Position numbers and translations under genes: made by a program
Source of the DNA: Basidiobolus meristosporus CBS 931.73
Taxonomy: Eukaryota > Fungi > Basidiobolomycota
Reading direction: 5' to 3'
Assembly (NCBI GenBank): GCA_002104905.1
Contig: MCFE01000004.1
Coordinates: 124,001-188,000, forward strand
DNA length: 64,000 nt
Shown here: positions 7,701 through 57,435 of the stretch, piece after piece
Numbering within the stretch: the first letter of the stretch is position 1
Layout of the letters: each line of letters starts with the position of its first letter
The notes under the pieces: model-generated
Databases searched by the model: none
What the model was told of the DNA's origin: nothing
The model's input: only the letters and a program-made list of their open reading frames with translations

Positions 7701-9656
7701 TGAATCCAAGAAACTGAACTCAGCAGAGCAAGACTATCCAGTCCATGAGAAGGAGATGCTTGCTATAATACACTGTTTGAAGATATGGAGATGCTATATT
7801 GAAGGAGTCAAATGCACTGTGAAGACTGATCATGCCTTCCTCAAGTATATATTTACTCAGAAGGTACTCTCTAGAAGAATGACAAGATGGAGTGAATACA
7901 TTCAGCAATTTGACCTGGAGATTGTATACTGCCCTGGAAAAAACAACACGGTTGCTGATGCCTTATCAAGATTAGATCAAGTTGCACAACTCAACTTGGT
8001 GCATGAATCAGATTGGCCTAGCCTATTACCAAAGTACTTGGAGGACCAAGCCATTCCTAAAGAGGTGGATGAAGATATCAAGAAGATAATCCGTGATGAA
8101 GCCAGCAAATTTGTAGTACAGGATGAAACACTCTACCAAGTTGTTGATGGAAGCCCTATTGCCTATTGCCCTTATGTTTCTTGCCTGGATTTAATACATA
8201 AGCTACACAATGGATATGGACATCTTGGGATTGAAGGAACCTATAGCCTTGTGAAAGCCAGAGCATGGTGGCCCAGAATGAAACAGGATATTGAGAAGCT
8301 AGTGAAAACATGCCCAAACTGCCAAATTGATCAAGGCCAGCCACAAAGAATTGCCAAACTCTTCCCTTTGGAGCCTGTAAGACCATTTGAGAGATGGGGA
8401 ATTGACTTTATTGGAAGACTGCCAACTACCAGGAAATGCAACCGTGGATCCTAGTAGCAATTGACCATGCCACTAAATGGCCAGTTGCTAAAGCTGTACC
8501 AATAGCCAGTGAACAAGAAGTTGCAAGTTTCATTTACCATGAGATCCTTATGAAGTTTGGATGCCCTGTGGAGATCTTATCTGATAGAGGAGCAAACTTT
8601 ATGGCAAAGACATTAGAGGCTTACCTGGAAGTGCAGCAGATCAGACACTTGAAAACCTCGGCATATCACCCCAGAACTAATGGAGTCACTGGGTGGTTTA
8701 ATGGATTATTTGGAAAAATGCTCACAAAGTATGCAAATGGAGTTGTCAGTAGATGGGATGAGTATATAGACCAAGCACTCTTTGCATGCAGAGTCAGAGT
8801 ACACAACACCACCCAGCAATCACCATTTTACTTAGTGTATGAATGTGAACCAAGGATTCCAGGAGATCTCACACAACCAAAGCTTGCAGACACCTTAGAA
8901 GATGAACTCAGTCAGCCAAGTTGACACCAGCAAATGGAACAAAGATGTCAAGAGGCTCAGACCAAAGTATCTCAAAGTGCAGAAAAGATGAAGCAGAGAT
9001 TTGATAAGACTATAGCACCAGAAGCATTGACAGTTGGGAACTTTGTATTGCTAAGAAACAACACTCGGAAGAAGTTTGAGCCACAATGGACAGGGCCATT
9101 CAAGATCATCAGAGAATGTTCATTTGTAACTTACCAACTGGTGCACAAACAAGGCAATATCCGGGAAGACTTAGTGTATAGGGACAGACTCAAGCTTGCA
9201 AGACTTGCTGATAATATTGAACCATCAAGATATTGGTATCACAAAAAAAGAGATTCAGGAGAACCCTCTCAACTTTAGTAGGGGAGAATGTTATGATCTG
9301 CTGCTTGAATGTTTAAGTTAGATCAGTTTTTAGTCAAATCAATTAGTATATGTTTAGGTTATCAGTATATCAGTATTATCTATTAAATCAGTAGCATTAG
9401 TCAGCAAATGAATCAGCAGATCCTTATCAGACAGAAATAGATATATTAAGTAGGATCTTATTGGGTGATGATGATGCAATCAGATGAGTCATCAGCCACA
9501 ACCTACATTAGGAAATACAATTAGTCAGCAATTGATCTGGCAAAATGTATATGAGGAGCTGCTGGAGCCTCAATAAAAATCAGTTCAAGTTTTAGTGAAT
9601 ACAATACGAGCTAAACTCCCTATTCCTCTACAACTCTTATACCAAGACTTGTAACA
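4737..9656 (+). mobile_element. Full-length but decayed Ty3/gypsy retrotransposon Gypsy-1
   Basis: 368-bp LTRs at 4737-5104 and 9289-9656 (about 9 mismatches by eye), 4-bp TSD GATG, PBS TGGTAGCAGC and PPT AGTAGGGGAGAA. Gag, CCHC knuckle (CLNCHQQGHIAKYC), protease DSG, RT YLDD, RNase H DAS and integrase HHCC/DDE occur in gypsy order, with stops and frameshifts. Confidence 0.95.
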
Positions 9657-10944: not shown

Positions 10945-13900
10945 TGTTGAAATATTGGACTATTTGGTATCATTCAGCAGCTAAAAATTTACTTAACAAT
11001 TCTAGGCTAGTCTTAGTCACTGTAGGACTCATTTACTGCCTTAACTTTGCCACTTTCTCCAGATATATGATCTTATGATTATTCCCCTATAGTCAGGATC
11101 AAATTAGCACTATTACCAAACATTATGTACTAACCCTGAAACTGTTACAGAATGCTCCTGAATATTGAGAAACCCTCCCTACTTAGTGTTGCAGCTGTAT
11201 TACTTCTACAAAGGTATAAATACTGAGCTTCTTTATTAATAAACAACAGTTCAACTATTATCACTATTTCTTGATAAGTTCCTTATATCCAAATCACTTC
11301 TTAAATTGCAACAGGTTATGAGCCCCGATTGCCTTAATCTATTCTAAAGATGACTTCTACCAGCAAACAAAGCAATACCAACATCTTCCCTGTAAAGGAG
11401 AGGTTTGATGGGAAGAACTACAGACTTTGGAGAATCAAGATGCAGATCCACCTTGAGGAAAGAAAGCTTTGGAACATAGTAACAGGAAAGGAAGTTGAGC
11501 CCAAAGAAACAGCAGAAGATATGGAGAAGTTTCAAGAGAAGGAGAGAAAGGCCTTCAATGCAATATGCATCAATGTGCAAGACTCCTTCATTGGACAAAT
11601 CCATGCCTCAAATACTGCCAAAGCAGAATGGGAATCCTTAGAGATGATCTTTAGAGCAAAGTCAGTATCAAGCAAGCTTTATTTGAAACAAAAGTTCTTC
11701 AACATGAGAAAAAAGCCAGATGATGACATGCTACAACTCATTACCAGAATGGAGACACTTGCAGAAGAACTTTACAGTATTAATGCTGGTGTAGATGATG
11801 AAGAAAAGATACTCTGTCTGCTTTGCAGCCTACCAGACAAGTATCAGCCACTCATACTTTCTTTTGAAAGCAGAGAAGACAACTTGACTTTAGACTATGT
11901 CAAAGGAAGACTTCTCCATGAAGAACTCAGACGTAATGACCAAGCAGAGAAAATTGAAGATAATGCTTTATTCAGTTCAAAAAGGCATACAGAAAAGAAG
12001 GGAAAGCAACAAAACCGAAGAAAACCTGGCTGCTGTAACTACTGTAAGAAGCCAGGACACTGGGCAAGAGAATGCAAGAAGAAACAAGCAGACAAAAAAC
12101 AGAAACTAGAGCAGGCAAACCATATAACTACTGATGAACAGCTATTTGTCACTGTACAAGAGAGTGCAAGTAACCAAAGTAATGAATGGTATATTGACTC
12201 TGGAGCATCACAGCATATTTGTGGTATAAAGGATTGGTTCAGCAACTTAAAGACTATTCCCGTAAGAAAGGCTTATCTGGGAGATAACTCTGCATTGGAA
12301 GCTACCGCCAGTGGGTCTGTACAACTAAATATGAGTGATAACTCAGGGGCAACAACGGCAAAACTGACTGACATACTCTATGTACCTGGAATAGCTAAGA
12401 ACCTACTCTCAGTCAGTAAAGCAACTACTCAGGGACTGAAATTTGTTTTTACTAAGCTGAGCTGCTCAATATTGAGTGAGAATGGACAAAAATTAGCTTC
12501 GGGAATCAGAGATCACAATATATACAAGTTACAATGCAAGATCATTGTACCTGAGTATGTCAACATTGCTGAAACTGATGAAACCAACTGGGAGACGTGG
12601 CATAGGAGGCTAGGACACATAGGGGAACAGAAAATGAGCCAATTGGTGAGAAATCAGCTTGTTTTGGGCCTAAAATACTCAATTCGGATCAAATTGAATG
12701 TTTGTAAGGGATGTTCATATGGCAAACAAGCTAGGCAACGTTTCAAGAGCTCAGAAGGCATCAATACCACCAAAATATTGGCTATTGTACACTCAGACAT
12801 ATGTGGCCCCATGAGAACACTGTCCTTTGGAGCCAAGAGATACTTTATGACGTTTATTGATGACAAGACAAGATATACATGGGTGTACTTCCTCAAAACA
12901 AAGGATGAAGCTTTAGAGACGTTTAAGCACTTCAAGAACATGGCAGAAACACAAACTGGGTGTAAATTGAAGGTACTATGAAGTGACAATGGAGGAGAAT
13001 ACTGCTCAAAGGAGTTTGCAAAATACTGCTTGTCTACTGGTATACTTCAACAGACCACAGTTCCTCATACTCCACAGCAAAATGGAGAAGCAGAACGTGC
13101 AAATAGAACAATAGTAGAGATGGGAAGATCTATGCTACATGATAAGGGAATGGACTACAAGTTTTGGGCTGAATCTGTTGCTACCGCTGTATACATCAAG
13201 AACAGATGCCCAACAACAGCACTACGCGATTCTACACCCTTTGAAGCATATACAGGCAAAGAACCAGATCTCCAGCACCTCAGGATCTTTGGCAGTGATG
13301 TTTTTTATCACATCCCTGACAAAAAACGCTTAAAGTTGGAACCAAAGAGTAGAAAAGGGATCTTTCTTGGGTATTGTGAAGATACTTAAGGGTATAGAGT
13401 GTATGATGGCAAAATTCAGAAGCTGTTCAAGAGCAGGGACGTTGTATTTGAGGAGAATTCAGATCAGAAAGCCACAGAAATCATTGGCCAGCTGCCTGAT
13501 GATGCAATCAACACAAATGAAGAAGATACGTACCAAATCCAGCCAGAGATGGAAGATACTTCTACCAGTTCCAGATCAGAACAGTTTATCCCAGTTAGGA
13601 GATTTACCAGAATAAGAAATGCCCCTGGATCCTGGTGGCAGACATCCAATGATCATGAAGAAGCTTATCTTGCCTTATGTGCCAAACCTCAGAATCTGGA
13701 ACAGGCAATGCAAGGTCCAGATGCTACTAAGTGGCAGCAAGCCATGCAGGAGGAGTACCAATCACTGATCAAGGCAAAAACGTGGGAACTGGTAGATTTA
13801 CCAAATGGGAGAAAGCCAATAGGATGTAGATGGGTCTACAAGATCAAGATAACCTCAAATGGTGCCGTTGAAAAGTACAAGGCTAGATTGGTAGCTAAAG

Positions 13901-15609
13901 GCTATTCCCAGATCCAGGGACTAGACTTTAAGGAAACATTTGCTCCGGTTGCCAAGTTTAACTCTATTAGGACAGTTCTAGCCCTGGCAGCTGTACACAG
14001 TCAAGATCTACACCAAATGGACGTCAAAACAGCCTTTCTAAGTGGGGATTTGCAAGAAACTGTATATATGGAGCAACCAGAAGGATTTACCGATCCAAAA
14101 AGCCCCCATAAGGTGTGCAAACTTAGAAAATCGTTGTATGGGCTTAAGCAGGCACCCAGAGCATGGTATAACAAGATTGACACATATCTAGAGGAAATTG
14201 GGCTCATATGTAGCACTGCAGATCAGAGTATATATGTGAAACAGCTCAAGAAGGGAGTGATCAACCTAATAATAACTACAAGTGACTAGGAGCCACTTAA
14301 ACAGATGAAATCAGATCTCTTCAGCAAGTTTGAGATGAAAGATCTTGGAAAATTGAGCTATTTTCTTGGAATTGAGGTCAAATTTGACATACCTACGCAG
14401 AAAATTGTGCTGAATCAGTCTAAGTACATCAGGGACATTCTTAGACGCTTCAAAATGGAAAATTGCAAACCTGCAGCAACCCGTATGGACAATAGCCTGA
14501 AATTAAGCAAATCTCAGCCAGTTATAGATGAAAACGGCTCAAATATGGACCAAAACTTTCCCTATCAATCAATGGTCGGTAGCCTAATGTACTTGATGGT
14601 GTCTACACGTCCAGACATTGCAGTAGCAGTTGGAATAGTCAGTCAATTCATGCAGAATTATGGATCCAATCAAATTGCAGCAGTTAAGCGGATTTTCAGA
14701 TATCTACAAGGTACCATAAATATGGTACTGGAATACTCTGGAGCAGCAAATAGGCAAAAATTTGATGGTTATAGTGATTCAGATTGGGGTAGGGATCTGA
14801 TTGACAGATGCTTTACCACAGGCTATGTATTTCTTTATGCTGGTGCAGCTATTACTTGGAATTGCAAGAAACAACCAAATGTGGCACTATCTACAACTGA
14901 AGCCAAATATATGGCTGCATGTCAAGCAACTAAGGAGGCTATATGGCTACAAAAATTATTCAAAGACTTAGGTTTTAATTCAGGTGAACCAACATGTATT
15001 TACAAGGATAATCAAAGTTGTATTTCATTAGCTAGGAATCCTACTAATCATGCCAGAACTAAGCACATTGATATACAGCATCACTTTGTGAGGGAAGCTG
15101 TAGAAAATAACTTAGTAGAGCTGGTTTACTGCCCAACTGACAAAATGGTGGCAGACATATTGACAAAACCACTAGCTAGGCCACAGTTGGAGATCCTTAG
15201 AGAGAAATTGGGATTAAGAAATTATTTAGTTGAGGGGGAGTGTCGAAATATTGGACTATTTGGTATCATTCAGCAGCTAAAAATTTACTTAACAATTCTA
15301 GGCTAGTCTTAGTCACTGTAGGACTCATTTACTGCCTTAACTTTGCCACTTTCTCCAGATATATGTTCTTATGATTATTCCCCTATAGTCAGGATCAAAT
15401 TAGCACTATTACCAAACATTATGTACTAACCCTGAAACTGTTACAGAATACTCCTGAATATTGAGAAACCCTCCCTACTTAGTGTTGCAGCTGTATTACT
15501 TCTACAAAGGTATAAATACTGAGCTTCTTTATTAATAAACAACAGTTCAACTATTATCACTATTTCTTGATAAGTTCCTTATATCCAAATCACTTCTTAA
15601 ATTGAAACA
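10945..15609 (+). mobile_element. Ty1/copia element Copia-2 (young, near-intact gag-pol but RT-dead)
   Basis: 369-bp LTRs at 10945-11313 and 15241-15609 with 4 mismatches. PBS GGTTATGAGCCC is the copia-type internal tRNA-iMet fragment primer. PPT is AGTTGAGGGGGAG. Gag-pol 11350-~15240 has three in-frame stops (12979, 13387, 14287) and a 21-bp deletion removing the YVDD motif. Confidence 0.95.
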
Positions 15610-40869: not shown

Positions 40870-43050
40870 GTATCCACACCATGCTTCAGATGGAGTAGTG
40901 TCACAAAGTATTCTGTAATAACTCTTATTTTGAAGTTATATAGCTGTGTTAACTGATTCTACCCAAAAATCACAGGATAATTTCTGATCATAGATCAAAG
41001 TTCTTGTCATATCAATTATTGTGCTGTTTGCATGTTCTGCTGATCCATTTTGCTGTGGGGAGTATGGCACAGTAGTCTCTTGCTTTATCCCATGAATTTT
41101 GCAGAAGTGGATGAAGAGCTTGAGGTATACTCTCCACCATTGTCAGAGCATATTTTCATGATTTTTCACCATTTTCTCTCTCCACCATGACTTTGAACTC
41201 CCTGAGCTTAGACAGAGCTTCTTCCTTTCTCTCCATGAAGTAAACCCGCGTGAATTCTGTATAATCATCAATAAAAGTGATTAAATACTTCATCCCACCT
41301 AAGGACAAATTTTGCATAGGTCCACACAGATCTGAGTGAATTAGATCTAATTTTTTCTTAGTTTTGATTAACCCAGAGCTCTTGAACAGTTGTCTGGCTT
41401 GTTTCCCATATATGCAGGCCTCACAGTGGTCCAAATTAGCTGGGGGATCAATCTTTACTCTGGAAATCAGCTGATCTTTGATCATTTTGCACAAATAATC
41501 AAAATTTATGTGTCCAAATCTCCTGTGCCAAAGCATTGCTGTTTCTTCATTTTACCTGCTTATAGTGGCTTCCAAATAAGATTGAATATAAGTCAACTTG
41601 TATAGATTCTGATCACTGATACCCAAAGCAATATGGGCACCATTTTGATCAGTCATCTTGCATCCAGAATTGCCAAAGCTGAAACTGAGTCCTTCTGCAG
41701 TGGCCTTGCTTACAGATAGTAGGTTCTTGGCTATTTCTGGTACATGGAGTACTTCTTTAAAGGTCAGTGTATGGCTTCCTTCACTGCTTCTAAGGTTTAC
41801 TAGGATAGTTCCTTCTCCCACTGCATCAGGTGTCCTATAGTCACCCATGAAAACCTTCTTAATTGGAATTTCTTGAAATTGGGTAAAAGTTCTTTTAGGT
41901 GTGCAAAGTGTTGAGATGCTCCAGAGTCAATATGCCACATCTAAGAATCCTTGTTTTTGGTCATATTTAGTGCAGATATGAATAGTCTATCTTCAGCTGT
42001 TGCAGCATTTCCATGTTCTGGCTTCTTTTGATGATTATCTCTCTTTTTGAGACACTGGTCTGTTGTGTGTCCTTTCCTTTTATATTGGTTGCAAAACAGG
42101 TTTCTGTTGCCTTTGTAGGGTCTTGGGTACCTCCTTTGCTGGTTATCATTACTTATTAAAGCATTTTCTTCTTCCATCTTATTGGCGCTTGATTTTTTTG
42201 ATTCCTCATCCAGGCACCTTCCATATAAGTAATTTAAGGTCAAATCTTTAGTTCTGGACTCTAGGGCTGATACAAGGCTCTGAAACTTGTCTGCCAGGCT
42301 ATTCAGGATGGTAACTATTATATCCTCATCAGTAGGTGGTACACCCACAGATTCCATCTCATCTTCCAGCAGGGTAATTCTGTTAATTAGGTTTTTCATT
42401 TCTTCTCCTGGCAGCATCTTTAGAGTGAAGAATTTTTGTCTCAGATACATTTTCTTAGCAGCTGAACATGACTGGTAGGTGTTGTCTAATGCCTTCCAGG
42501 CATTCTTTGCCATTTTTGCTCTTGAGCATTGAATTAGCAATTTGTCCTAAACATTGAGGCCAATGCAGTTATAGGCACTTTGTTCTTTCTTCTGGTACTT
42601 TAAGGCTTCCTCTCCCACATTTTTAGGAGGGCATTCTTCTCCCATGACAATATCCCAAAGGCCTCTCTCTTGTAGCAGCATCTTCATCTTCACCTTCCAC
42701 ACTTGGTAGTTAGATCTATCCAACTTTTCAGCAGAGGGAAAAATTCCAGTAATAGCAGTAGTAGACATTGCAGAGAGTGACAGCTTGGGGTTCATAGCCT
42801 GTTGTAAGAGTCTTGAAGATATTGGAAGTGATTGGGAGAACAAGTAGATTATGTGGTTTTCACTTAATGATTTATTGAATGTAAAAGTAGTATTTATACT
42901 TTTACATGGTCTTGGCATAATAAGCGCATATAATAGGTTAAGGAAGGTCCCAAGAGCATGTGTGCAAAGTTTGGGGCTGTTTGGACAACTTATCCAATTT
43001 TCATGATCTGGGTAAATATTCTAAGTAAATTCCAACAAGGAATTTGGTCA
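40870..43050 (-). mobile_element. Second Ty1/copia family (Copia-F), 3'-truncated after the integrase core
   Basis: Gag from ATG 42768 (..KLDRSNYQVWKVKMKMLLQERGLWDIV), knuckle remnant, protease WHIDSGAS, GAG-pre-integrase LWHRRFGH and integrase HSDLCGP. PBS GGCTATGAACCCC adjoins the LTR edge at 42800. Confidence 0.85.
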
Positions 43051-45160: not shown

Positions 45161-46616
45161 ATGAAACCTTCATACGTGGCCTGGACAATTTGCAGAGCAT
45201 CTCTACCTTTGATCCTTTCACTTAAATCTTTCCTGCCAACGTCTTCTGCATCCGCCACAACCACCACCACCACTTCTTGGCAAACATCTACGACTGCTGG
45301 ATCAACATCGTTTACTTCCCAGTCGACTATAGCTTGGGATACAGAGAATATTTCCCAGACCATATCGGTGATACCACGAGATGGTATGTACTTTTACTGC
45401 CCGTCATATGGAAACCAAGTACAGGCCTAAACTTGCATTTTCTGAGCAGTGCTGGAGGAGAACTGTGGGCCGGATATCTACTGTCTACCGAAGGCTGATG
45501 ATACATGGGTCATGGGGAAACTCCCCAGTGGTATGATTCGATGGAACCATAACCACCCTCTGTTCAAGGTGCAGGGCTATGTGGATGTTCGCCTTTTCGA
45601 GATGACCGACACCCGTAAGCCTGTCAAGGAGTGGATCAACATACACAACAACGACGGTTTGCTGACCGTCAGCCTAACCAAGGATACGGACTGGTTTGCA
45701 CTGACCCATGGCAACCGTGAGAACACCAGCATCATGAGACAGTTTCGATTCTTGATCACTCCGCATGGCGACTGGGCAGAACATCAACCTTGGGGACCAA
45801 TTTTCAACATAGAAGGTATGCACACTTGCTTTGCGACCATACTCTGTGCTTGTTGATAACCTGATCCTCCGTTAGAGCCCCCATCATTCGCCATCCAACC
45901 ATCCAATACCCATGCTACCGAGTCGGGGAAGCTAGCAAGAGATGCGCTTACCCCTTATGGCGCCAAGCCTACGTCTACGAATATCGAGGTAATGATCAGT
46001 AATGCTGATCCCTCGCCCAATCAGGATAGGATACCCCCTTGGGTAGTTGTCGGTATTGGTGCCAGCTGCCTAGTTACAGTGCTTGTTAGTGCCATATATC
46101 CTTTTGAAATCTTTACGGTAGATGGTGTGAGCCGAGAGTTTCATTTGATTGATTATCTATTCCTTAATTCGAGGGCATACATTGATCTTTGTAGTACGTC
46201 GTCGCCACCCCCCGAAAACCATCAGCCTAACGTTTGATGATGTCGGTACATTACCAACCCATGGCCCAGACTCGTCAGATGAGAAGAAAAATCTAGAGGC
46301 CGATGGCGGATCCCATCAATTAATCGGAACTGATTCCGATCAGACTCCCAATTCGTTGCGGCTAACCGTGAAAGACGCCCGAATGATCGCCGATACCTAT
46401 AGGCAGCTACTAAGAAAACCTAGCTGGAGTGGCAGGGACATCGAGACCCCCCAACGAACAAAATCGTATTACAGCGATGAACTGATGAAGCGGGAGTTAG
46501 CAGCCGAAGGAACTGGTGTGAAGCACGTTACGTGGACAACATTGTCGGCGCCGGAAACAGTTCCCGAAGACCAGGAATGGTCCAGAAACAGTATATTCGT
46601 TGAGTCATCTGCTTAG
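45161..46616 (+). CDS. Type I single-pass membrane protein (signal-like N-terminus, S/T-rich stretch, Cys-containing ectodomain, TM, cytoplasmic tail), about 4 exons
   Basis: In-frame joins at 45383/45450 and 45815/45876 across GTATGT/GTATGC..AG introns. Hydrophobic segment PPWVVVGIGASCLVTVLV is followed by RRR. The tail runs ...IADTYRQLLRKPSW...ELMKRELAAEGTGV. The third intron junction is uncertain. Confidence 0.75.
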
Positions 46617-46851
46617 CGGAAATGTGTCGGCCTCTGCGCTATTCCCTTGTTTTCTTCTAAACCGGCTTTATTTAAGAAAATGATCATATACAATGATTAA
46701 AGATAGATTGCTTGTATCCCGCTGTAAATAGTCGACTTGATAAAAAGATTTTGGGAACCTCAGTAGGAAGGCAGACAATGGTTAAATCATCATTATATGA
46801 TTTCTGTCAATGACACATCCATTGGGTTTCTTCATAGGTTCCAATGTTGTT

Positions 46852-46920: not shown

Positions 46921-48022
46921 TTTTACGTTTTAAGATGGATATCATGGAATTTTATCTATTTACACTTTACATCTCGAATACCAATAGGTTATCAATTTTG
47001 AAAAAAAAAATGAACGTTTTGAACCGTGATTGTGTACTACACACTCTCTCCACATGATTGACACTTGACAGTGTAACAGAACCTGTAGGATGTTCCTTGC
47101 CTACTCCAATGTTATCTGTGTAGATTGGACTGCCAATACTGATAACACAATCAAAGTTTCGGAAATTTCTCGGCCTATGGATAGGATGCGTGTAGTGGTG
47201 GGTGTTTAGATATCTGGAAACAGACCAGTCGATCGAGGGTGATCCATACACTCTGACTCACAACTCTATCTACGGTGTAAACTTCCAATGACAGATTAGC
47301 CAAATTCTGGCATGCGGTCATAGATCGGCTTATCGTTTACCAGACAGCTACGGATACTCTGATATCTTATCATCGTGTCTCGCTTGCACTTGACTTTGAC
47401 AGGAACCGTGCCTAGAATTTGATACCTTCCCCGCTAAACATAGAGTGTACACACTGAATACTGCAGGTGGATACTCGCCTCGATGACCGGAATACTGCGG
47501 TATGTTAGGAATTACGGCCATTGGATTGAAGGAAATTAATATCAACTATAACCATATACAAATTCTTTATCATTCTATGGGTGTCGACTTTAATTGAGCC
47601 TAATCCTTTATTCTAAGTAACATCAATCTTTCCTATTTTGGAGATAAACGATGAATTTTTCCACGGTCAGATAACAATATTGCAAGGTTGAGAGAGAAAG
47701 AGCTCTGATTGGTGAAGCCAAGATCAGGTTTCAAGGGAGGGGATTAAGATTCCAACTTTGCTCAATTCCTGGTTCAAGATTACGACGGGACAATTATGCT
47801 GTCAGTCAAACCCCAAGTCTTATTGGCTGCATGATCATGTGAGGTTCCTGTTTATGGTCTCTGGTGAAAGGAAGCCGGCCAAATCCATAATGGAAACATA
47901 CCGGAGTTCCGGTCACTTTTTGTTGACTAATTAAGGCCAGGCTTCGTTTATAAAAACTGCCTTTGCCAGCAGTAGAATAGCAAACCATCAGCGTCACCAG
48001 CATTCCCTACTAGCCTTACAAG

Positions 48023-48208
48023 ATGAGAATCAACGAAGTGTCCAGCATCGAAACCATTACTTTCCTTCGCCTCACTCCCGAAGAATGCGACCAGGCCACT
48101 ACAGGATTGGAGACCGAGGACCAAGCCCCGCTTGCCGAACCAGTATTCAATGGCTTCAAGTTCATGCGGTTGACCCCTGAGCCCATCGAAGGAGCCCCCA
48201 AATGTTAG
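48023..48208 (+). CDS. Double-F[LM]RLTP micropeptide 1 (61 aa)
   Basis: MRINEVSSIETIT-FLRLTPEE...NGFK-FMRLTPEPIEGAPKC. TATAAAAA at 47949. Confidence 0.85.
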   Translation: MRINEVSSIETITFLRLTPEECDQATTGLETEDQAPLAEPVFNGFKFMRLTPEPIEGAPKC

Positions 48209-48489
48209 CTTGGCCATTTTAAAGCACAGAGTGTGTTTGGGACGGCTCCGCTAACATTCCTCCTTTTGTACTATAATAATCATTTTCGTTGAAAATGAAC
48301 ACTGCAGTCAGGAGCAAACTTATGTAATTGGGATTCCCATACGTGAGGCTATAAATAATTCAACCAATTTTTGTGAATAAACCAAATCTATACCATAATT
48401 ATTATACAGTTCGTTAGGCTCCCGTTAATTCAAGAGCTCATAAAATATATTTATACGATGGATATTCGAGTACACGGTTGGCATGGCAA

Positions 48490-48702
48490 CTACATATCAA
48501 CGGAGGAGCGTCGCGGTGTAAAGTCTGAGATATTGCTATGATCAAACTCTGGGGTCAAGCGAAGGAATACCAGCTTGGTAAGTACACCATCGTTTATTTT
48601 CTCGGTGGTTTCGGGCAACATTGGGACGTAGGTATCATTTGGTTCCTCTGCAACCAGGCGAAGGAAGGTAGTCGGTTGATTCTTATGAATTAGCTCTTGC
48701 AT
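48490..48702 (-). CDS. Double-motif micropeptide 2 (70 aa)
   Basis: MQELIHKNQPTT-FLRLVAEE...-FLRLTPEF...RRSSVDM. TATAAAA at 48762-48756. Confidence 0.85.
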   Translation of the reverse strand: MQELIHKNQPTTFLRLVAEEPNDTYVPMLPETTEKINDGVLTKLVFLRLTPEFDHSNISDFTPRRSSVDM

Positions 48703-49504
48703 CTTGTCTTATGTAGCTGATATGGATTGATGGTTGGGGATGAGCACCAGCAAGGTTTTATACAGCTGTGCTATGCACCGGTCAAGATAAGAACCCGAGT
48801 GGATAGAGTACTGTTGACTTGGAAAGACTCAAAACCAGAATGCTTATCTGTAGGGGGAGTTCGTCCAAAGCTCAAGACTCACACCCCGTAATACCAGTAG
48901 CTATTTGGTGGGTTCGGCGTGGATATGACTCGACCTGCAACGCCACGAGTGGTGGATGCAATGAATCAGTCATGAATCCAGTATATGGAAAGGGCCGATT
49001 ATCTTCAATCTCAAATTTAAAGCGAGAAGTCGCATTAGGGTTCATCAGCAATAGAGACTGATCCCAGTGGTGGTTGAAACGCTCAAAATCATCCCATCTT
49101 TCACATCCGTCCACATTACCAAGCATCATTACCACTCGGGAGGGAGGTTTTAGAATCACCAGATAACTAGTTTTTCTCATTATGAGATGGGTCATGTACA
49201 AATAGGAAATTCCAGTATTTTCAGGATGAGATATCAGAAAAAAGGGTCTAGTAGCACATCTGGATTTCCCAGTAAACCATAAACGTAAAGTGAGATTCAC
49301 TTCAGTAAATTAGGCTAATTCGTTTTCAGTTCAAGATAATATTTTTCACCCCAGTTGGGAATAGTATCTTTTTTCCGGTTTTTCATCGGTATGTAAAATA
49401 TCGTAGATCAATCAGGTTACGATGTTCACAAAGTTTCTTACAGATTTATTGAAGTTTACAAGCAATGGACCTTCGGCATAGAAAAATGATGCGTTTCAAG
49501 TTAT

Positions 49505-49726
49505 TTACATTTCAATCGAGGATCTTCGGGAGGTCTTCTGTGATTCGGTTGTCATATCAAACTCGGGGGTTAACCTCATGAAGACCTTATCTTCGTGTTG
49601 CTTGGTCTCTGCGAAGCTCTTGGAGTCAATCAGCTCTAGCAGTACAGGAAGCTCTACAGGGACTGGTTCTTCAGGACTTAACCGGAGGAAAGCCATAGGT
49701 TGGTTGTTGTGGATCAAGCTTTGCAT
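49505..49726 (-). CDS. Double-motif micropeptide 3 (73 aa)
   Basis: MQSLIHNNQPMA-FLRLSPEE...-FMRLTPEF...RRSSIEM. TTTAAATA at 49798-49791. Confidence 0.85.
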   Translation of the reverse strand: MQSLIHNNQPMAFLRLSPEEPVPVELPVLLELIDSKSFAETKQHEDKVFMRLTPEFDMTTESQKTSRRSSIEM

Positions 49727-50024
49727 GCTGGGCGGTAGAAGTCTGGACGGAGAGGTAGACTGGATGAATCTCCAGGGTAGCTGGGAGGAGTATTTAAAGA
49801 CTTTGCGATCATCTACGTTTCATTTATAATACAACTTGCATGATGCTGGTTTAGATTAAAAAATAACATGAAGAATACTGGGAAATCAATGGCGCGATTG
49901 ATGAAGCATACAGCCACAGATCATGGAGGAAGCAATTTTGAAACGAATCACATCAGCTTCCCATGATGATTAGCATTCAATGTAAGCATCATTCGTTCGT
50001 GGGAACTGGTAAACTCAGCACTTT

Positions 50025-50381
50025 CCTCTAGAGGCATCTTGCTGTTCCGTTAGAAACATATTTCCTCTAGGGGAAAACCGGCAGATCTAACACGCACCTT
50101 CCTCTAGAGGATGACGGTTTCGTAGCTTTGATGATTAATGTCCCTCAAAGTGTGGAATGGCACCCAACAACCCGCATTAATTTAGTGGAATTATAATTAG
50201 TAATTTCATTGATTGTAACCAGGGCTGTCAAGCCTAATTACACGCGAAGTCACTATATCATTCCCCATAAATAGCCATCAATACCTGTTCCCGAGACCAA
50301 CACGGATTTAACTCTGAGATCACAGCAGCGTGAGAACACCACCTGCCTGTATCAGACTGAAACTTCGATTTCCTCTAGAGG
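50025..50381. promoter_or_regulatory. Four copies of palindromic CCTCTAG(A/G)GG in the divergent promoter of micropeptides 3 and 4
   Basis: Copies at 50025-50034, 50064-50073 (within TTTCC-N6-GGAAA), 50101-50110 and 50372-50381, each preceded by TT. Confidence 0.6.
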
Positions 50382-50588
50382 CAACCAGAGTTGTGGATTC
50401 TTTGTATTTCCACCTTGCTGAAACAGAGTTCCTAATTCGTCCGTGTCAATTGAAGCAACGAAGAAAGAGAGTCGCCCATTTCGTACACTCCGATGTCAAA
50501 TAAAGCTAAGCCTTCTCCTCGCCCATTTTGAAGGTATAAATCCCCCGAGCTCCTGCCTAACTATCAACCATCAAGTCCAGCCAACGTC

Positions 50589-50756
50589 ATGCAATACCTG
50601 CTAAGCTCGGAGACTGTCGGGGTTTTCACCTTCCTTAGACTCACCCCCAATGAGGTTCCATCTGTGCCCAGCATACCGAACACCTTTTCGACGCCGTTGG
50701 ACACCCCTGATGGCTTGACCTTTATGCGATTAACACCTATGGAGACTGAGGATTGA
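50589..50756 (+). CDS. Double-motif micropeptide 4 (55 aa; below the ORF-track length cut-off)
   Basis: Hand translation: MQYLLSSETVGVFT-FLRLTPNEVPSVPSIPNTFSTPLDTPDGLT-FMRLTPMETED*. TATAAAT at 50535. Confidence 0.85.
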   Translation: MQYLLSSETVGVFTFLRLTPNEVPSVPSIPNTFSTPLDTPDGLTFMRLTPMETED

Positions 50757-51214
50757 GATCTTGGCATCACTTTGCATGTAAATAATCATTGTCATCACAA
50801 AGCCTCCTGAATATCGAGTTGAAGAATAAAGTGACGTTTGCCATTTTCCTGAATGCACTTGCTTCTAATATGCACTGAGGTGTATAGAACTGTTCCAAGC
50901 GTTCTATGAGCTACTCTACACCAAGGTATCAAGAGATTACTTCACGTGAAAAAGGGTTTGCCAAGGCTCACCTATCCCTAACTCGTATCTCAAACAATTA
51001 AGATAAGCCTGCATCCGGCTACATAACTATGCAAGATCCTAAATGAATATTGCTATTATCTACCCTTCTTGCTTGAATCCTTTGAAACAGCTTACTCGGA
51101 GACAAGATATAGTTGCATCGGAGTGGAGTAAGTAACGGAATAGAGAGTGTTCTCAAGTATTTATAGATCGACCTCTCTACAACCCTACTAACACAACAAT
51201 TTGCTTTCGTTACC

Positions 51215-51406
51215 ATGCACATCCAACCGAACAACGAACAGCCTTTGACCTTCCTTCGTCTTACTCCTGAGGAATCTTCCGAGTCTTTGGTTTCCGTTGC
51301 CCCCACCCAGGACCATGATGTCAATCTGGAGCCGGTCAGTAATCATGGCTTCTTGCGTTTAACCCCGGAGCATGAGACACTTACGGACAACCACTCCAGC
51401 GCCTGA
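51215..51406 (+). CDS. Double-motif micropeptide 5 (63 aa)
   Basis: MHIQPNNEQPLT-FLRLTPEE...NHG-FLRLTPEH.... TATTTATA at 51158. Confidence 0.85.
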   Translation: MHIQPNNEQPLTFLRLTPEESSESLVSVAPTQDHDVNLEPVSNHGFLRLTPEHETLTDNHSSA

Positions 51407-51609
51407 GTGGACCGTTTTAGCAACACAATCAGTCAGATTATATGTATGTATTGAGGTAAAGATTCAAGATAATCCGTGAATAAATAGGATAATTTGTTTA
51501 TTGTGTAATGGATCAAGTCAGATATGTATAGACTCATTGTTGCGATATGAGTGTGCTTTGAGGAAATGAATGTATTGTACAAGATGAGCGAGTGAAGGCG
51601 AAAAAGCAA

Positions 51610-51798
51610 CTACATCTCGCCCAGTGAGCATCCAAGGCTGACTTGTCCTGCGGACTCGATAGGCTCAGGGGTTAACCGCATGAAGGTGAATCCGTTGTAG
51701 ATGGGCTCAGAAAGAGGCACTTGGACTAAGGCATCAGATCCGAAGGAGACCTGGTCACAATCTTCAGGAGTAAGACGAAGGAAGGTCATGGTTTGCAT
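51610..51798 (-). CDS. Double-motif micropeptide 6 (62 aa; likely start 51798 rather than 51909)
   Basis: MQTMT-FLRLTPEDCDQ...NGFT-FMRLTPEPIESAGQVSLGCSLGEM. TATAAAA at 51871-51865 lies inside the longer ORF-track call, which favours the downstream ATG. Confidence 0.85.
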   Translation of the reverse strand: MQTMTFLRLTPEDCDQVSFGSDALVQVPLSEPIYNGFTFMRLTPEPIESAGQVSLGCSLGEM

Positions 51799-52174
51799 TT
51801 TCGGTAGGCTAGCGGCTGGGTAGAGCTTCGGGGGTGATGATTCCTCAAACCAGGGAAAACGGCGTTTTATAGATGGCCAGCAAAGCTGTAATTGGCATAT
51901 GATGGTCATCGGAATTCCAATGAGTTACTATATCAAGTGGGGAAGATAAAGTAGGCTATGTCACTTTGCTCCACATGATCTTTGCTGACTAACATGGCAT
52001 GTCAAGGAACAACGGTTCTGAGCATCGCCGCAATTGAATTCCAATCCCAATTTGGATCTGTCAGGAATATGACCAATTCTGTATATCATACATACCTAAT
52101 TAGTCTGGTTGAGTAGTGTTCCGTGTAACCGAATGCTCATCAATCTCTGTGATAAGCCCCAATGCCATGTATAG

Positions 52175-52381
52175 ATGACAGTTCATTATGACCCAACCCT
52201 CGACCCAACCCTCACTCTACCTAGTATCAGCATTATGACCCAACCTTCACTTCGCCTAGTATCAGGATCGCACGGAAAAACTCAAGCTCGTCACGCACCG
52301 ATCGGCTTTGCACGATTATCTACCATCCATGGCCCTTTTACCCTGAGGCCCGGCTATTTCGGAGCTGGTAGCTTACACTAG
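52175..52381 (+). CDS. Possible degenerate eighth member of the micropeptide family
   Basis: Contains QPSLRLVS (cf. QPTTFLRLVA) and GFARLS (cf. GFLRLT), spaced 20 aa apart. Directly abuts the TATA box of micropeptide 7. Confidence 0.3.
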   Translation: MTVHYDPTLDPTLTLPSISIMTQPSLRLVSGSHGKTQARHAPIGFARLSTIHGPFTLRPGYFGAGSLH

Positions 52382-52430
52382 TATTTAAACAAGGTCCATG
52401 GAGTGAAGAAAAGGCACCGATCATCACAAC

Positions 52431-52637
52431 ATGCAAAATCTCATTCAAAACGACCAAGCTTTCCAATTCTTGCGTCTCACTCCGGACGAAGCCCCTGTTG
52501 AAGTCACATCAGCACGGGAGAACATCATCGCAGCCTGGGAATCGCCGCTGTACTCGGAGGGAGCCTTCTTGCGATTGACACCAGAGCACGAAGATGTCTC
52601 GGACTATTCATCTTGGCGAAGCTCAATCGAAATGTAG
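52431..52637 (+). CDS. Double-motif micropeptide 7 (68 aa)
   Basis: MQNLIQNDQAFQ-FLRLTPDE...EGA-FLRLTPEH...WRSSIEM. TATTTAAA at 52382. Confidence 0.85.
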   Translation: MQNLIQNDQAFQFLRLTPDEAPVEVTSARENIIAAWESPLYSEGAFLRLTPEHEDVSDYSSWRSSIEM

Positions 52638-52773
52638 TTTACCAACCAGGGACCATGCATGTTATATCAAGCAATAAATTTTTGTATTCTATTCCTTAAA
52701 CCTTATACACGCAATGCAGTTAGGATTAGTTAGTTAGCAGATCGTTATTGATCAAATACCTGGGCATTCAAAT

Positions 52774-53460: not shown

Positions 53461-56400
53461 ATGGCCTCAGATGCTCTGCAACAAATTCAGATTGACTCTG
53501 AAATACCGCCTGATATGACTATACAGTCATATCTGCGTCAGGTGATAGCTCAAAGAAATGCACTCAGGGTCCAGAACGGCCAGTTGTGGAAGATCGTTGA
53601 AAAGCAGCGTCTTATAATTCATCAACTAAAAGTCCTTTCCGCGAAAAACAGCGAACTATTGAAGAACCAACTACCAGAGAAATCTCTTTCAAAAGATTCG
53701 GTGGACGAGACTTTATGTCAGACTGATGCCGCGATTACTTCTTTGAGAAAGGAATACGACATCAAGGCAAGTCAAGCTGACTTCAGTTCCTTAGATTCCC
53801 CAACTTCTATGGAAGCCTCAATACTCACCCTACCGAAGGGTCCGGAAGATGATAACGGTGGGGATTTCAATGATGACAGCCTGAGGAATATTGAAGCAGC
53901 CGAGCTTGAGGTCGCGACCCTCAATCCTGGCAAGAAAAGACCAATAATACCACAGGCAACTGACGTTACCTCTGGAGTAGTTCCTCCAATTTCTGGTACA
54001 GATGTTGAGCACGCACCCGAATCCGCTTTGACAACTACTCAAATTACCGAAAGTGAAATAAACAACGAAGGCCCAATTGTCATTGATAAACAACCAAACG
54101 CTCCAGATAACGAGGAAACAGAGGGGGTAAATTTGAAGATATATATTTATGTTTGATGTACAAGGTATTCATATTACACTTCTCCATTAGACCTCTTCTG
54201 AAGCCAACATCTTGAGCTCGGAGACAGGCCTCGTATCAAACGACTCGGAGGCGGAACCACCATTTTCAAATCAGAAATCTTCGGAAGTAGAATTAGCCCA
54301 GATGAATGAACTAAACACATCCGAGAGTAGCCTTCCTTCTACTTCAGACCAGGGGCTTTCTGGAGCGGAGAGTGAAAGCCTGGATATAGGACAGGATTTT
54401 GACAAAGATGAGGAATACAGGGCACACGATGGATCCAATTTTACCAAGGTTGAAAAGCCTACCGAAGATTACTCTACTCCTGACCCATCAACTGACTCTG
54501 TTACTACGAAAATGGCGAACGACCCTACTCGAGAAGCCTCTGCACCCAACACCCGAAAGAACTCTGAGCCCTTGGTCGATCTAACTGGATTAAGGTCTTT
54601 AATTGGAGTAGACGTCAAAGTGAATGGCTCTACCGTAAAGGTCAACTCAAAGGGAAAGGAGGTACTCGTGTTTTTAATATCCATTTTGAAGAAGGAGTCG
54701 CAGGAAGAAGCGGAATTGTGGACGATCGAAAAGTTGTATTCCGATTTTTTGGCTTTGGATGCCAAGGTAAATTTGGCTGTAGCGATACAAGCTTATTGAA
54801 CGGGGTCTTAACTGTTTACCATGTGTAGCTTAAAGCAACTCAACCTCGAAATATCGTAAATCAAATCGGAAAGCTCCCTGATAAGAATCTTTTCGCTACT
54901 CATGCACCATCCAAGGTTGACCAAAGAAAGCTGGCACTTCAACAGTACCTTCAGCACCTGCTTGTCCTGAATATGGTGGATACACGAGATGTATGTGAAT
55001 TTTTCTCCACCAATCTCACCCAGCGCTCCAGGAGCCAAGAAAAGGCCTATGGCATTAAGGAAGGCTATCTGACAAAGAAGGGAAAGAACTTTGGCGGATG
55101 GAAACGTAGATATTACTCATTGAAGAGCCCTATCCTAAATTACTGTGAAAATAAGGATGGGAGCATTCTAGGGTCGATCAGAGTTTCAAACTGTCAGATC
55201 TCTAAACAGTCCGCTAGTATTGATCTGGGCGATGACTCTTATCGCCACGCTTTTATGATAGTCGAACCAAAAAAAAGCGGAATAGGGGTGCATCGCCATA
55301 TATTCTGCGCTGATAGTGATGCAGAGCGAGATGAGTGGGTAGCTGCTTTGTTGGTGTACACTGCACCTGGAAAGCATCCATCCGCATCGCCCTCCTTAAC
55401 CGCGTCCTCAACTCAAGATTCTTACGGAGAAGGTGGGAATAAAGCGAAGGAGAAGCTCAAAAAATTCATAAGGGCCGATTCTGTCAAACAACCGCAAACA
55501 TCAGCGCCATCAAAACAAACAGCACACACTTCTCAGTCTGCCCCTGCACCCATTCAAAAATCGGTATCGATTGTTGGGACAGATGTAAGTCGAAATACCA
55601 GTGAAATAGTGAAGGCACACCGAAAAAGCGCTTCTCTAAAGGATCCACCGACAAGCTCTTTAAACATGCCCTCGTCCACAAAAGAGAGCTGCGCGACAGA
55701 TCAGCAACACGTCACCTCTACCTCTAAAGCTGGAGGATTGCCACAATCAGCTTTCCTCAAAAAACCCTTTGCTGGAAATCTGAAAAGTAATGCCCAGGTC
55801 AAGATGCAAAAGGAGAAGGAGCCCAAGAAGGGAGGTAGAATGACTTTCCATTGGGGAAAGAAAATCTTCTCTAGTAGTAGCGGCAGTAGTGGTAAGTGAT
55901 ATGGAATTTATGTGCGGTAGAAGGACGAAATGATCTGAAAAAGGATTTGCGTGTAATAGAAGGCAAGAGCAAGGCGCCATACGTCCCCGTTTTCGGGGTC
56001 CCATTGGAAAAAGCAGTTGAAGTATCTCGAGTCAAGGATGGTTATGAGTTGCCCGCAGTCGTATACCGTTGCATTGAGTATTTAGACGCAAAATTAGGTA
56101 TATGAAGCATACAACCACTCCATGGATTCGAGTTTTAACGTGATTACTCCAGCTCATAAGGAAGAAGGGATATATCGCTTATCCGGAAGCTCTGCTGCTA
56201 TCAAGGTGCTGCGAGAAAAATTCGATCAAGGTATCTCCTGAGATTGCTTATTAAATCTGCTCAAGAACTGATAGCTTTACTAGATATGGATGTGAACCTG
56301 CTTGGCTCTGGTGTATATTATGATGTGCATGCAATTGCTGGGTTATTGAAACTGTATCTGCGTGAGTTGCCAACCAGTGTGCTAACACACGAGATGCATC

Positions 56401-57435
56401 AAGATTTCTTACATGTGATCGGTATGTAGATACGCCTGCTTAGAATATCCATCACATATTCTTAACCCTGCGTTATAGATCTGCTCAACCGCAAAGAGCG
56501 AGTCAACGAGCTTGGTCGACTGGTATCCACCTTACCCTTGGCCAACTATACACTTCTACGCTGCCTGATTGCCCACTTGATTCGGATTGTACAGCACGCA
56601 GACGTCAACAAAATGACAGTTCGAAACGTTGGGATAGTTTTTTCTCCAACGTTGGGCATCCCGGCCGGGGTGTTCAACCTCTTGATGACTGAGTTTGAGT
56701 ATATTTTTTCGGTAAATGACCAAGGCTTCGCTGCACCCAGAACCATCGATGACAGCGATCAAGAGGACAATCTCGAAGAGCCCTCCACAATCCCCCAAGA
56801 AGCCCAAGCACAGGAAGACACGCTGGTAAACGATGCGGTCGTGGATTCCTCGAATAGCTTTGATCAGCCGGCCGAGCCCAACCGGCACGAAGACGAGGCC
56901 CAAAGCTTTGATGAATCGCAGTTTGCAGCCTCGATATCCAAATTCAAAAACCCCCAGTTTCGATCCATCTTACGTGACAGAGCTGGAAGAAACAATCGCA
57001 ACAGTATCATATATGCTGGTGCGGCACCAGAAAGCATGGTCAAGATGGAAGTTGGTTTACATGGTATGTACTCAATCTAATAATCACCATGTCACACGCA
57101 TCTAATCTAGCCGATGTGTAGTACGACCAACCAGTGGCGAATATGAAGAGGATGTTTATGATTTAGTCTATCCTTCTGGCGGTTCAAGCGGGGATAATGA
57201 GATGGAATTTCCATTAGACTCCATGGAGGATGAGGGTGAGGGTGAGGGTGAGGGTGAGGGAGAAGAGACTTCAAATGAGAAAGCGAAGCACGGTGAGAAT
57301 GAGTGCGAAGACCCAGATCAAGCTGTAGAGGAAGCCGAGGATGGTCAAAGCAAGTCGAGTATACCGGAAGTTACCACTGACAACGAAGCAAACAACACAT
57401 CCAACGGTACGAATAAGCCACCCGACACAGTTTAA
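53461..57435 (+). CDS. BEM3: PX-PH-RhoGAP protein, Bem3-like (multi-exon)
   Basis: N-terminal coiled coil (RNALRVQNGQLWKIVEKQR), PX domain (LFATHAPSKVDQRKLALQQYL), PH domain (KEGYLTKKGKNFGGWKRRYY) and RhoGAP domain (VFGVPLE..PAVVYRCIEYL; IYRLSGS; NKMTVRNVGIVFSPTL). In-frame GT-AG joins, e.g. 54126/54191 and 54766/54829. Confidence 0.88.

Follow-up and report, generated by a model that had tools for sequence, protein, structure and literature searches.

The peptide genes and their relatives

We analysed a 64,000-nucleotide stretch of the Basidiobolus meristosporus CBS 931.73 genome (hereafter the window; assembly GCA_002104905.1, contig MCFE01000004.1, positions 124,001 to 188,000 of the forward strand), in which positions 48023-52637 hold seven intron-less open reading frames (ORFs) of 55-73 codons, located on both strands and designated pep1 to pep7 (Table 1). 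Basidiobolus, an early-diverging fungus, inhabits amphibian and reptile guts and occasionally causes human infection; to our knowledge, its small-protein repertoire is essentially unexplored. The motif F-[LM]-R-L-T-P-E occurs twice in each of the seven peptides, the first copy of pep2 being the one degenerate copy. The pattern F-[LM]-R-L-[TS]-P is matched by 13 of the 14 copies, the exception reading FLRLVA, and all its matches in the six-frame translation of the window fall inside the cluster; by a rough estimate, ~0.02 copies would be expected by chance in 64 kb.

Relatives were found in a second species. A profile built from the seven peptides and run against 5.8 billion proteins retrieved four adjacent hypothetical proteins of B. 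ranarum (K7432_015915 to 015918). Their genes share a single 3,658-bp contig, where order and orientation match those of pep2, pep3, pep4 and pep5. The family tree pairs these four with pep2-pep5 as orthologues, pep5 and its partner P0005 lying in an unresolved polytomy with pep7. The pep2 orthologue (P0003) is 54% identical, with a non-synonymous divergence (pN) of 0.28 versus a synonymous divergence (pS) of 0.71; the pep3 orthologue (P0002) is 70% identical and has 37 residues between its motifs, counted from Phe to Phe (hereafter the spacing), and the pep4 and pep5 orthologues (P0004 and P0005) both have a spacing of 33. An exhaustive hidden Markov model search over 1.84 billion representatives added one more B. 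ranarum member, P0009 (66 residues; JASJQH010007224.1, 3049-3249), which carries F-I-R-L-T-P-E twice, with Ile in place of Leu or Met, at a spacing of 35. This gene stands alone between a 213-residue gene of unknown function and an aldo-keto reductase gene, and the family is therefore not confined to the cluster.

On present data, and as far as sequence searches reach, the family appears confined to Basidiobolus. A Pfam scan of the seven peptides returned no family at E values up to 10, an NCBIfam scan of the 12 members gave a single noise match (E = 0.14), and nothing in the ESM Atlas matched the peptides. A profile search of the PDB gave only chance matches to the immunoglobulin lambda constant strand YLSLTPEQ (best E = 0.0018, over two weak stretches), and metagenome contigs scanned with the subfamily alignment yielded 87 pattern stretches and no relative. 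Three further candidates were set aside. P0006 consists of three perfect 16-residue (48-nt) tandem repeats on a repeat-rich, eukaryote-like metagenome contig and has no similarity to the leader or tail; it was taken as a chance match, and its 16-residue period was therefore left out of the family spacings. P0007 is a 4162-residue protein with repeated FLRVTADEV units, a repeat artefact, and P0008 is an artefact of low-complexity repeat translation. In full-text literature searches the 6-7-mer motif strings were unmatched, while 5-6-mers gave chance matches only, e.g. RLTPEE in the Hsp70 proteins BiP and GRP75; searches combining Basidiobolus, peptide and RiPP (ribosomally synthesised and post-translationally modified peptide) returned nothing relevant. 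We found no description of the family.

The 12 members share a single layout. A leader of ~12 residues (M-Q-x-L-I-H-x-N-Q-P-x-T) precedes motif 1 (F-L-R-L-T-P-E/D-E/D), which has a context of its own, Q-P-x-T before and E/D-E/D after; a linker of 24-31 residues leads to motif 2 (N-G-hydrophobic-x-F-[LM]-R-L-T-P-E), preceded by P-hydrophobic-x-N-G-hydrophobic-x; and a tail of 5-19 residues ends the chain. In one subfamily (pep2, pep3, pep7, P0002 and P0003) the tail ends R-R-S-S-[VI]-[ED]-M, which, judged by eye, is likely a protein kinase A (PKA)-type R-R-x-S-hydrophobic site. No other part of the peptide is nearly as constrained as the motif: Pro closes it in 22 of the 24 copies, and all 12 members keep two copies, none having one or three. 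When the N-terminal halves were compared with the C-terminal halves using hhalign, only the motif aligned (E = 7.5e-9), and nothing did once it was masked (E = 0.49). By this comparison, an ancestral tandem duplication as the putative source of the 33-residue period is neither shown nor excluded.

The peptides are 55-74 residues long, contain 4-7 prolines each and are acidic, with an isoelectric point of 4.0-5.3 in 11 members and 6.6 in P0003. Their N-termini are polar (M-Q-x-L-I-H-x-N-Q-P) and therefore form no signal peptide. AlphaFold2, run with the 12-member alignment, gave a predicted template modelling score of 0.15 and no secondary structure, while the predicted local distance difference test score peaks over the two motifs, at 77 and 70, versus 54-65 elsewhere. 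These models are typical of disordered chains carrying binding motifs that would fold conditionally.

Several lines of evidence bear on whether these ORFs are genes. Between B. meristosporus and B. ranarum the intergenic DNA is ~45% identical, i.e. at the random level, and the ORFs are 55-80% identical; over the orthologue pairs pS is 0.65-0.89 (saturated) versus a pN of 0.17-0.28. Over 22 motif copies, all six Arg codons, all six codons for the second Leu, three Thr codons and four Pro codons are used, and this synonymous spread places the selection on the peptide and not on the nucleotides. Promoter and poly(A) signals accompany nearly all of the genes: a TATA-like box lies 48-102 nt before the ATG, and AATAAA follows the stop codon by 35-170 nt. 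Contigs from run X3 (eight pieces, essentially identical to the window, two of them with two differing letters each) lie only on pep1, pep3, pep4, pep6 and pep7 and at the margin of the following gene; three end 13-14 nt past AATAAA, one starts ~45 nt after a TATA box, and several carry Illumina adapter at their ends. This pattern is what an RNA library gives and was therefore taken as evidence of expression, from which we infer that five of the seven genes are expressed; the lack of an X3 contig on pep2 and pep5 proves nothing either way. A tRNA scan and an Rfam search over the ORFs returned no match. Overall, these data indicate separately transcribed, intron-less genes under purifying selection at the peptide level. 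That the ORFs are not genes, the motif being a DNA- or RNA-level element or the frames being chance products of repeated DNA, could account for six of the seven being unannotated in the public assembly and for the lack of relatives in Pfam or other databases, but is almost certainly wrong, as it is already contradicted by the conservation, codon and contig data: synonymous variation within the motif (six Arg and six Leu codons), ORFs kept open in synteny in a species with saturated neutral sites, TATA boxes, poly(A) signals and transcript-like contigs, to which the blank Rfam result over the ORFs is added.

Table 1. Genes and conserved elements at the cluster, with the two flanking genes. Spacing is in residues; TATA box positions are relative to the ATG and AATAAA positions to the stop codon.
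Feature	Position	Strand	Description	Spacing	TATA box	AATAAA	Run X3 contig
pep1	48023-48208	+	61 aa; motifs at residues 14 and 47	33	-74	+167	47998-48394
pep2	48490-48702	-	70 aa; motif 1 degenerate (FLRLVA); tail end RRSSVDM	33	-60		none
pep3	49505-49726	-	73 aa; tail end RRSSIEM	36			49467-49639
Conserved non-coding island 1	50016-50142		87-100% identical to B. ranarum; three palindromes				
Conserved non-coding island 2	50352-50400		90-94% identical to B. ranarum; fourth palindrome				
pep4	50589-50756	+	55 aa	30	-54	+68	50323-50844 (ends 14 nt past AATAAA)
pep5	51215-51406	+	63 aa	33			none
pep6	51610-51798	-	62 aa from the ATG at 51798; mechanical ORF extends to 51909	33	-73		51483-51802 (ends 14 nt past AATAAA)
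pep7	52431-52637	+	68 aa; tail end WRSSIEM	33			52506-52652 (two variants, W36R and E43K)
Upstream neighbour gene	45381-46616	+	306 aa, spliced, without Pfam match				
Downstream neighbour gene	53515-57435	+	1167-aa PX-PH-RhoGAP protein				

For pep6 the start given in Table 1 is favoured because the TATA box falls within the longer ORF. This gene is the closest paralogue of pep1, the two lying in an inverted repeat (I1) of 139 nt at 73% identity.

Strong non-coding conservation between the two species is limited to two islands in the divergent pep3/pep4 promoter, and these islands are better conserved than the ORFs. They carry four copies of the palindrome TTCCTCTAG[AG]GG, at 50024-50035, 50063-50074, 50100-50111 and 50371-50382, which is absent elsewhere in the window (eight strand-matches versus 1.66 expected, with no shuffle reaching eight). 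The B. ranarum contig also holds the palindrome four times (1306-1316, 1589-1599, 1626-1636 and 1724-1734), and none was found near the dispersed member P0009. The palindromes are probably the binding site of a dimeric transcription factor. The X3 contig on pep4 begins 266 nt 5′ of the start codon, a position far ahead of the TATA box, and takes in the fourth palindrome; a longer or second transcript may arise from the pep3/pep4 promoter region.

Spacing between the two motifs

A previous reading of this DNA from its letters alone (the sequence-only reading) had proposed that the spacing is held at 33 residues although the linkers are largely unalignable, and that this length sets a fixed distance between two sites on a target, or else that an excised 27-residue core is constrained in length for a processing enzyme. 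Its counts for pep1 to pep7 (33, 33, 36, 30, 33, 33 and 33) agree with those that we recomputed from the translations. Its description of the linkers is correct for the central ~18 residues, which are at the random level between paralogues, and overstated for the ends, which retain signal: over the eight 27-residue linkers, ungapped identity between paralogues is 13.5% versus 7.2% for shuffled sequences (standard deviation 0.9, maximum 11%), with the residual similarity residing in the E/D-E/D that directly follows motif 1 and the P-hydrophobic-x-N-G-hydrophobic-x that leads into motif 2. Linker identity between orthologues is 26-50%.

In B. ranarum the spacings are 33, 33, 33, 37 and 35. Across the family the distances are not broad and random, so that this comparison does not refute the proposal of the sequence-only reading, but neither are they fixed. 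Over the 12 members the value is 33 in eight and 30, 35, 36 or 37 in the others (standard deviation 1.7), so that the shifts run from -3 to +4 and exceed the ±3 initially described; two of the four orthologue pairs have changed spacing since the species split (30 versus 33, and 36 versus 37). Leader length is about equally stable, with 12 residues in 7 of the 12 members. Over a maximum-likelihood tree whose total length is 9.6 substitutions per site, we counted at least four length changes in the 27-residue linker, four in the 12-residue leader and five in the ~14-residue tail, corresponding to 0.015 events per residue per substitution for the linker versus ~0.036 for leader and tail together. 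The two rates differ two-fold, which is not statistically significant (binomial p = 0.12). Nevertheless, eight members have a spacing of exactly 33 despite linker centres at the random level, and much substitution has therefore occurred without net change in length.

Taken together, the whole architecture is conserved and the linker not specially so. The shifts between orthologues, the similarly stable leader and the non-significant difference in rate weaken the idea of a fixed distance, and a rigid ruler is not supported; two-site binding and a length-constrained core both stay candidates. We favour a soft stabilising tendency around an ancestral length, as would suit a flexible tether that must not be too short and whose individual residues matter little. 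A spacing held at 33 is correct as a count but weakly supported as a constraint, and is no basis for invoking a molecular ruler. These numbers also bear on the possibility that the motifs act singly, as two equivalent phosphorylation sites, as degrons or through binding-site dosage, the period having no function and being an inherited length that has drifted slightly. A per-residue indel rate in the linker that is not significantly reduced relative to leader and tail, a spacing changed in half of the orthologue pairs and a leader conserved in length to a similar degree would all be expected on such a basis, as would the decay of one motif copy to FLRLVA in pep2 and to FLRLTE in the orthologue P0003, both genes being still under purifying selection. 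Against independent action stand the two copies kept without exception across the family, the exact 33 shared by eight members whose mid-linker identity has fallen to the random level, and the small size of all spacing changes; we consider it an unlikely explanation.

Candidate roles of the motif pair

The reading that we tentatively favour, without giving it even odds, is that the two motif copies are linear docking motifs through which one peptide engages its partner at two points. Each copy would be a short linear motif that folds only on binding; proline-directed phosphorylation is predicted as likely at the Thr-Pro within it, and PKA-type phosphorylation as likely at the R-R-x-S-hydrophobic tail. 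A single peptide would touch two sites on its partner, or span two subunits, with a gain in avidity, and the ~33-residue period would be an ancestral flexible tether whose length weak stabilising selection has kept close to the original. The observed range of 30-37 residues is compatible with this proposal because a flexible two-motif tether would tolerate it, and the restriction of the similarity between the two halves of the peptide to the motif counts in its favour. Comparable modes of action are known. PKI, inhibitor-1/DARPP-32 and ARPP-19/ENSA/Igo are disordered, heat-stable regulators of 55-120 residues with one or two short motifs containing a phosphorylatable Ser or Thr; inhibitor-1/DARPP-32 has a Thr-Pro, and several such regulators have a PKA-type R-R-x-S site and contact their target enzyme at two points. 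The Basidiobolus peptides are likewise small, predicted to be disordered and hydrophilic, but their motif is different and duplicated, and no homology was detected (Pfam empty at E up to 10). The likeness is a comparison of working mode; family membership fails.

Several points weigh against the two-point tether. Neither a dimeric partner nor a processing enzyme has been identified, and no enzyme gene flanks the cluster. We know of no published motif pattern that the motif fits consistently. The length events on the tree are too few, and p = 0.12 cannot separate a soft constraint from no constraint. Conserved, Pro-ended flanks around a variable segment fit a processed precursor equally well. 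Finally, run X3 is listed as 'DNA?', itself a guess, and its RNA origin was inferred from the positions of the contigs. Among the short-linear-motif classes that we compared by eye, none fits all copies, and they serve as leads only: the F-x-x-L type of LC3-interacting region or Atg8-interacting motif (LIR/AIM), the SUMO-interacting motif, B56 L-x-x-I-x-E, calcineurin L-x-V-P and P-x-I-x-I-T, the Cdc4/Fbw7 phosphodegron, the 14-3-3 modes, peroxisomal targeting signal 2 and the destruction box (D-box)/RxL.

The peptides could alternatively be precursors, RiPP-like or propeptides, in which the motifs are recognition or cleavage sites, e.g. for a prolyl-oligopeptidase-type cut after Pro, and a 27-33-residue segment is released and possibly modified or cyclised, each paralogue supplying a different core. 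MSDIN/cycloamanide precursors of Amanita and Galerina are fungal RiPPs that are cut and cyclised by the prolyl oligopeptidase POPB. Like them, the Basidiobolus genes are very small, have many paralogues, lack a signal peptide (as do cytosolic fungal RiPP precursors such as MSDIN and borosin) and encode conserved flanks around a variable middle; Pro is the last residue before each presumed border, the MSDIN leader ending in ...T-R-L-P and the Basidiobolus motif in ...R-L-T-P. The layout of conserved leader, variable middle and conserved follower, the Pro at the end of 22 of 24 motifs, the clustering of paralogues with a strongly diverged middle segment, the leader better conserved between orthologues, and the high word depth of the pep1 contig are all in keeping with a precursor. 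By contrast, the Basidiobolus segment has 27 residues (24-31 across the family) versus 6-10 for the MSDIN core, and a core of 27-33 residues far exceeds known fungal RiPP cores; the same motif stands on both sides, whereas MSDIN has a distinct leader and follower. Moreover, the middle segment has no residue conserved across paralogues as a candidate modification site, and the strong conservation of the RRSS[VI][ED]M tail in one subfamily would be odd for a discarded follower. No sequence similarity links the peptides to any known precursor family: for an MSDIN-type leader or follower, word-indexed and exhaustive profile searches returned only Basidiobolus proteins and repeat artefacts. The window contains no POPB-type prolyl oligopeptidase gene, and no peptidase, macrocyclase or tailoring enzyme adjoins the cluster, its neighbours being the 306-aa and PX-PH-RhoGAP proteins. 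With KEX2-processed repeat proteins and dikaritins (ustiloxin, phomopsin, alpha-factor-like; PMC7329392 came up when the literature was searched) the peptides share a conserved short motif delimiting variable segments in a small fungal product, but they have no signal peptide, no Lys-Arg next to either motif and only two motif copies. Pfam scans of the flanking ORFs gave only retrotransposon, PH and RhoGAP domains, and neither DUF3328 (UstYa) nor tyrosinase was found. A precursor role is, on balance, improbable.

A more specific proposal is a new Basidiobolus-specific system: either a precursor cut at both motifs to give a ~30-residue product, or a phosphorylation-switched two-site clamp of a dimeric enzyme, which in both cases would be co-regulated via the TTCCTCTAGAGG palindromes. 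We regard this combination as distinctly unlikely.

A bulk or self-assembly role involving no specific partner, i.e. spore protectants of the hydrophilin or late embryogenesis abundant (LEA) type, or beta-strand pairing between motifs in the style of two-repeat amyloid signalling, would suit the small size, hydrophilicity, disorder and apparent abundance of the peptides, and dehydrin- and LEA-type proteins typically repeat a short motif with spacers that vary. As in HET-s of filamentous fungi, where the pseudo-repeats are ~36 residues apart from start to start, the two units are joined by a variable flexible loop; however, the conserved unit is 7-9 residues versus ~21 in HET-s. The residue-by-residue conservation of the motif (F, R, L, T and P invariant or nearly so) argues for specific recognition, acidic and Pro-rich sequences are poor amyloid formers, and AlphaFold predicted neither strands nor strand pairing. 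No NACHT or NB-ARC match was found among the flanking ORFs, and no gene for a NOD-like receptor (NLR)-type partner lies adjacent to the cluster. Such a role appears very unlikely.

Whichever role applies, the genes form a family of at least 12 microproteins under clear purifying selection, built on a short linear motif for which we found no described match. If two-site binding or double cleavage were true, peptides of 55-74 residues would provide a synthesisable handle for fishing the partner or the enzyme.

Annotation and neighbourhood

Window positions 38023-58208 match 20,186 bases of contig MCFE01000004.1 exactly, yet the family is almost wholly absent from the reference annotation. In GCA_002104905.1, pep1 (P0001) is the sole member called; pep2 to pep7, six of the seven cluster genes, are missing, and no gene is annotated between pep1 and the downstream PX-PH-RhoGAP gene. 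Exact-sequence look-ups of pep3 and pep7 in public gene calls found neither on record. The case shows how standard fungal annotation misses real genes of <100 codons, and such under-annotation of small genes may be general in the B. meristosporus genome.

The two variants of the X3 contig on pep7 (52536 T>C, changing Trp36 to Arg, and 52557 G>A, changing Glu43 to Lys) have depths of 64 and 39, and both changes lie in the linker. They reflect either allelic variation or expression from a second, nearly identical copy.

The window is eukaryotic DNA of 36-49% G+C in which copia and gypsy retroelements abound. Gypsy-type ORFs (RVT_1, RNase H, integrase zinc finger) and copia-type ORFs (gag, RVT_2, integrase) with broken frames occur at 5163-8924, 11350-15306 and 41941-42540, and the cluster is positioned at the edge of this transposon-rich stretch. 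One exon of the upstream neighbour gave a weak ESM Atlas lead (score 0.86) to fungal membrane proteins of the DUF7137/Psg1 type. The PX-PH-RhoGAP gene on the other side is an ordinary signalling gene with no evident tie to the cluster. Two Rfam matches below the gathering score resemble C/D-box small nucleolar RNAs, both on the minus strand: snoU83 at 46756-46840 (36.6 bits, E = 0.0024), and snoZ221/R21b at 49027-49100 (25.5 bits, E = 0.057), the latter between pep2 and pep3.

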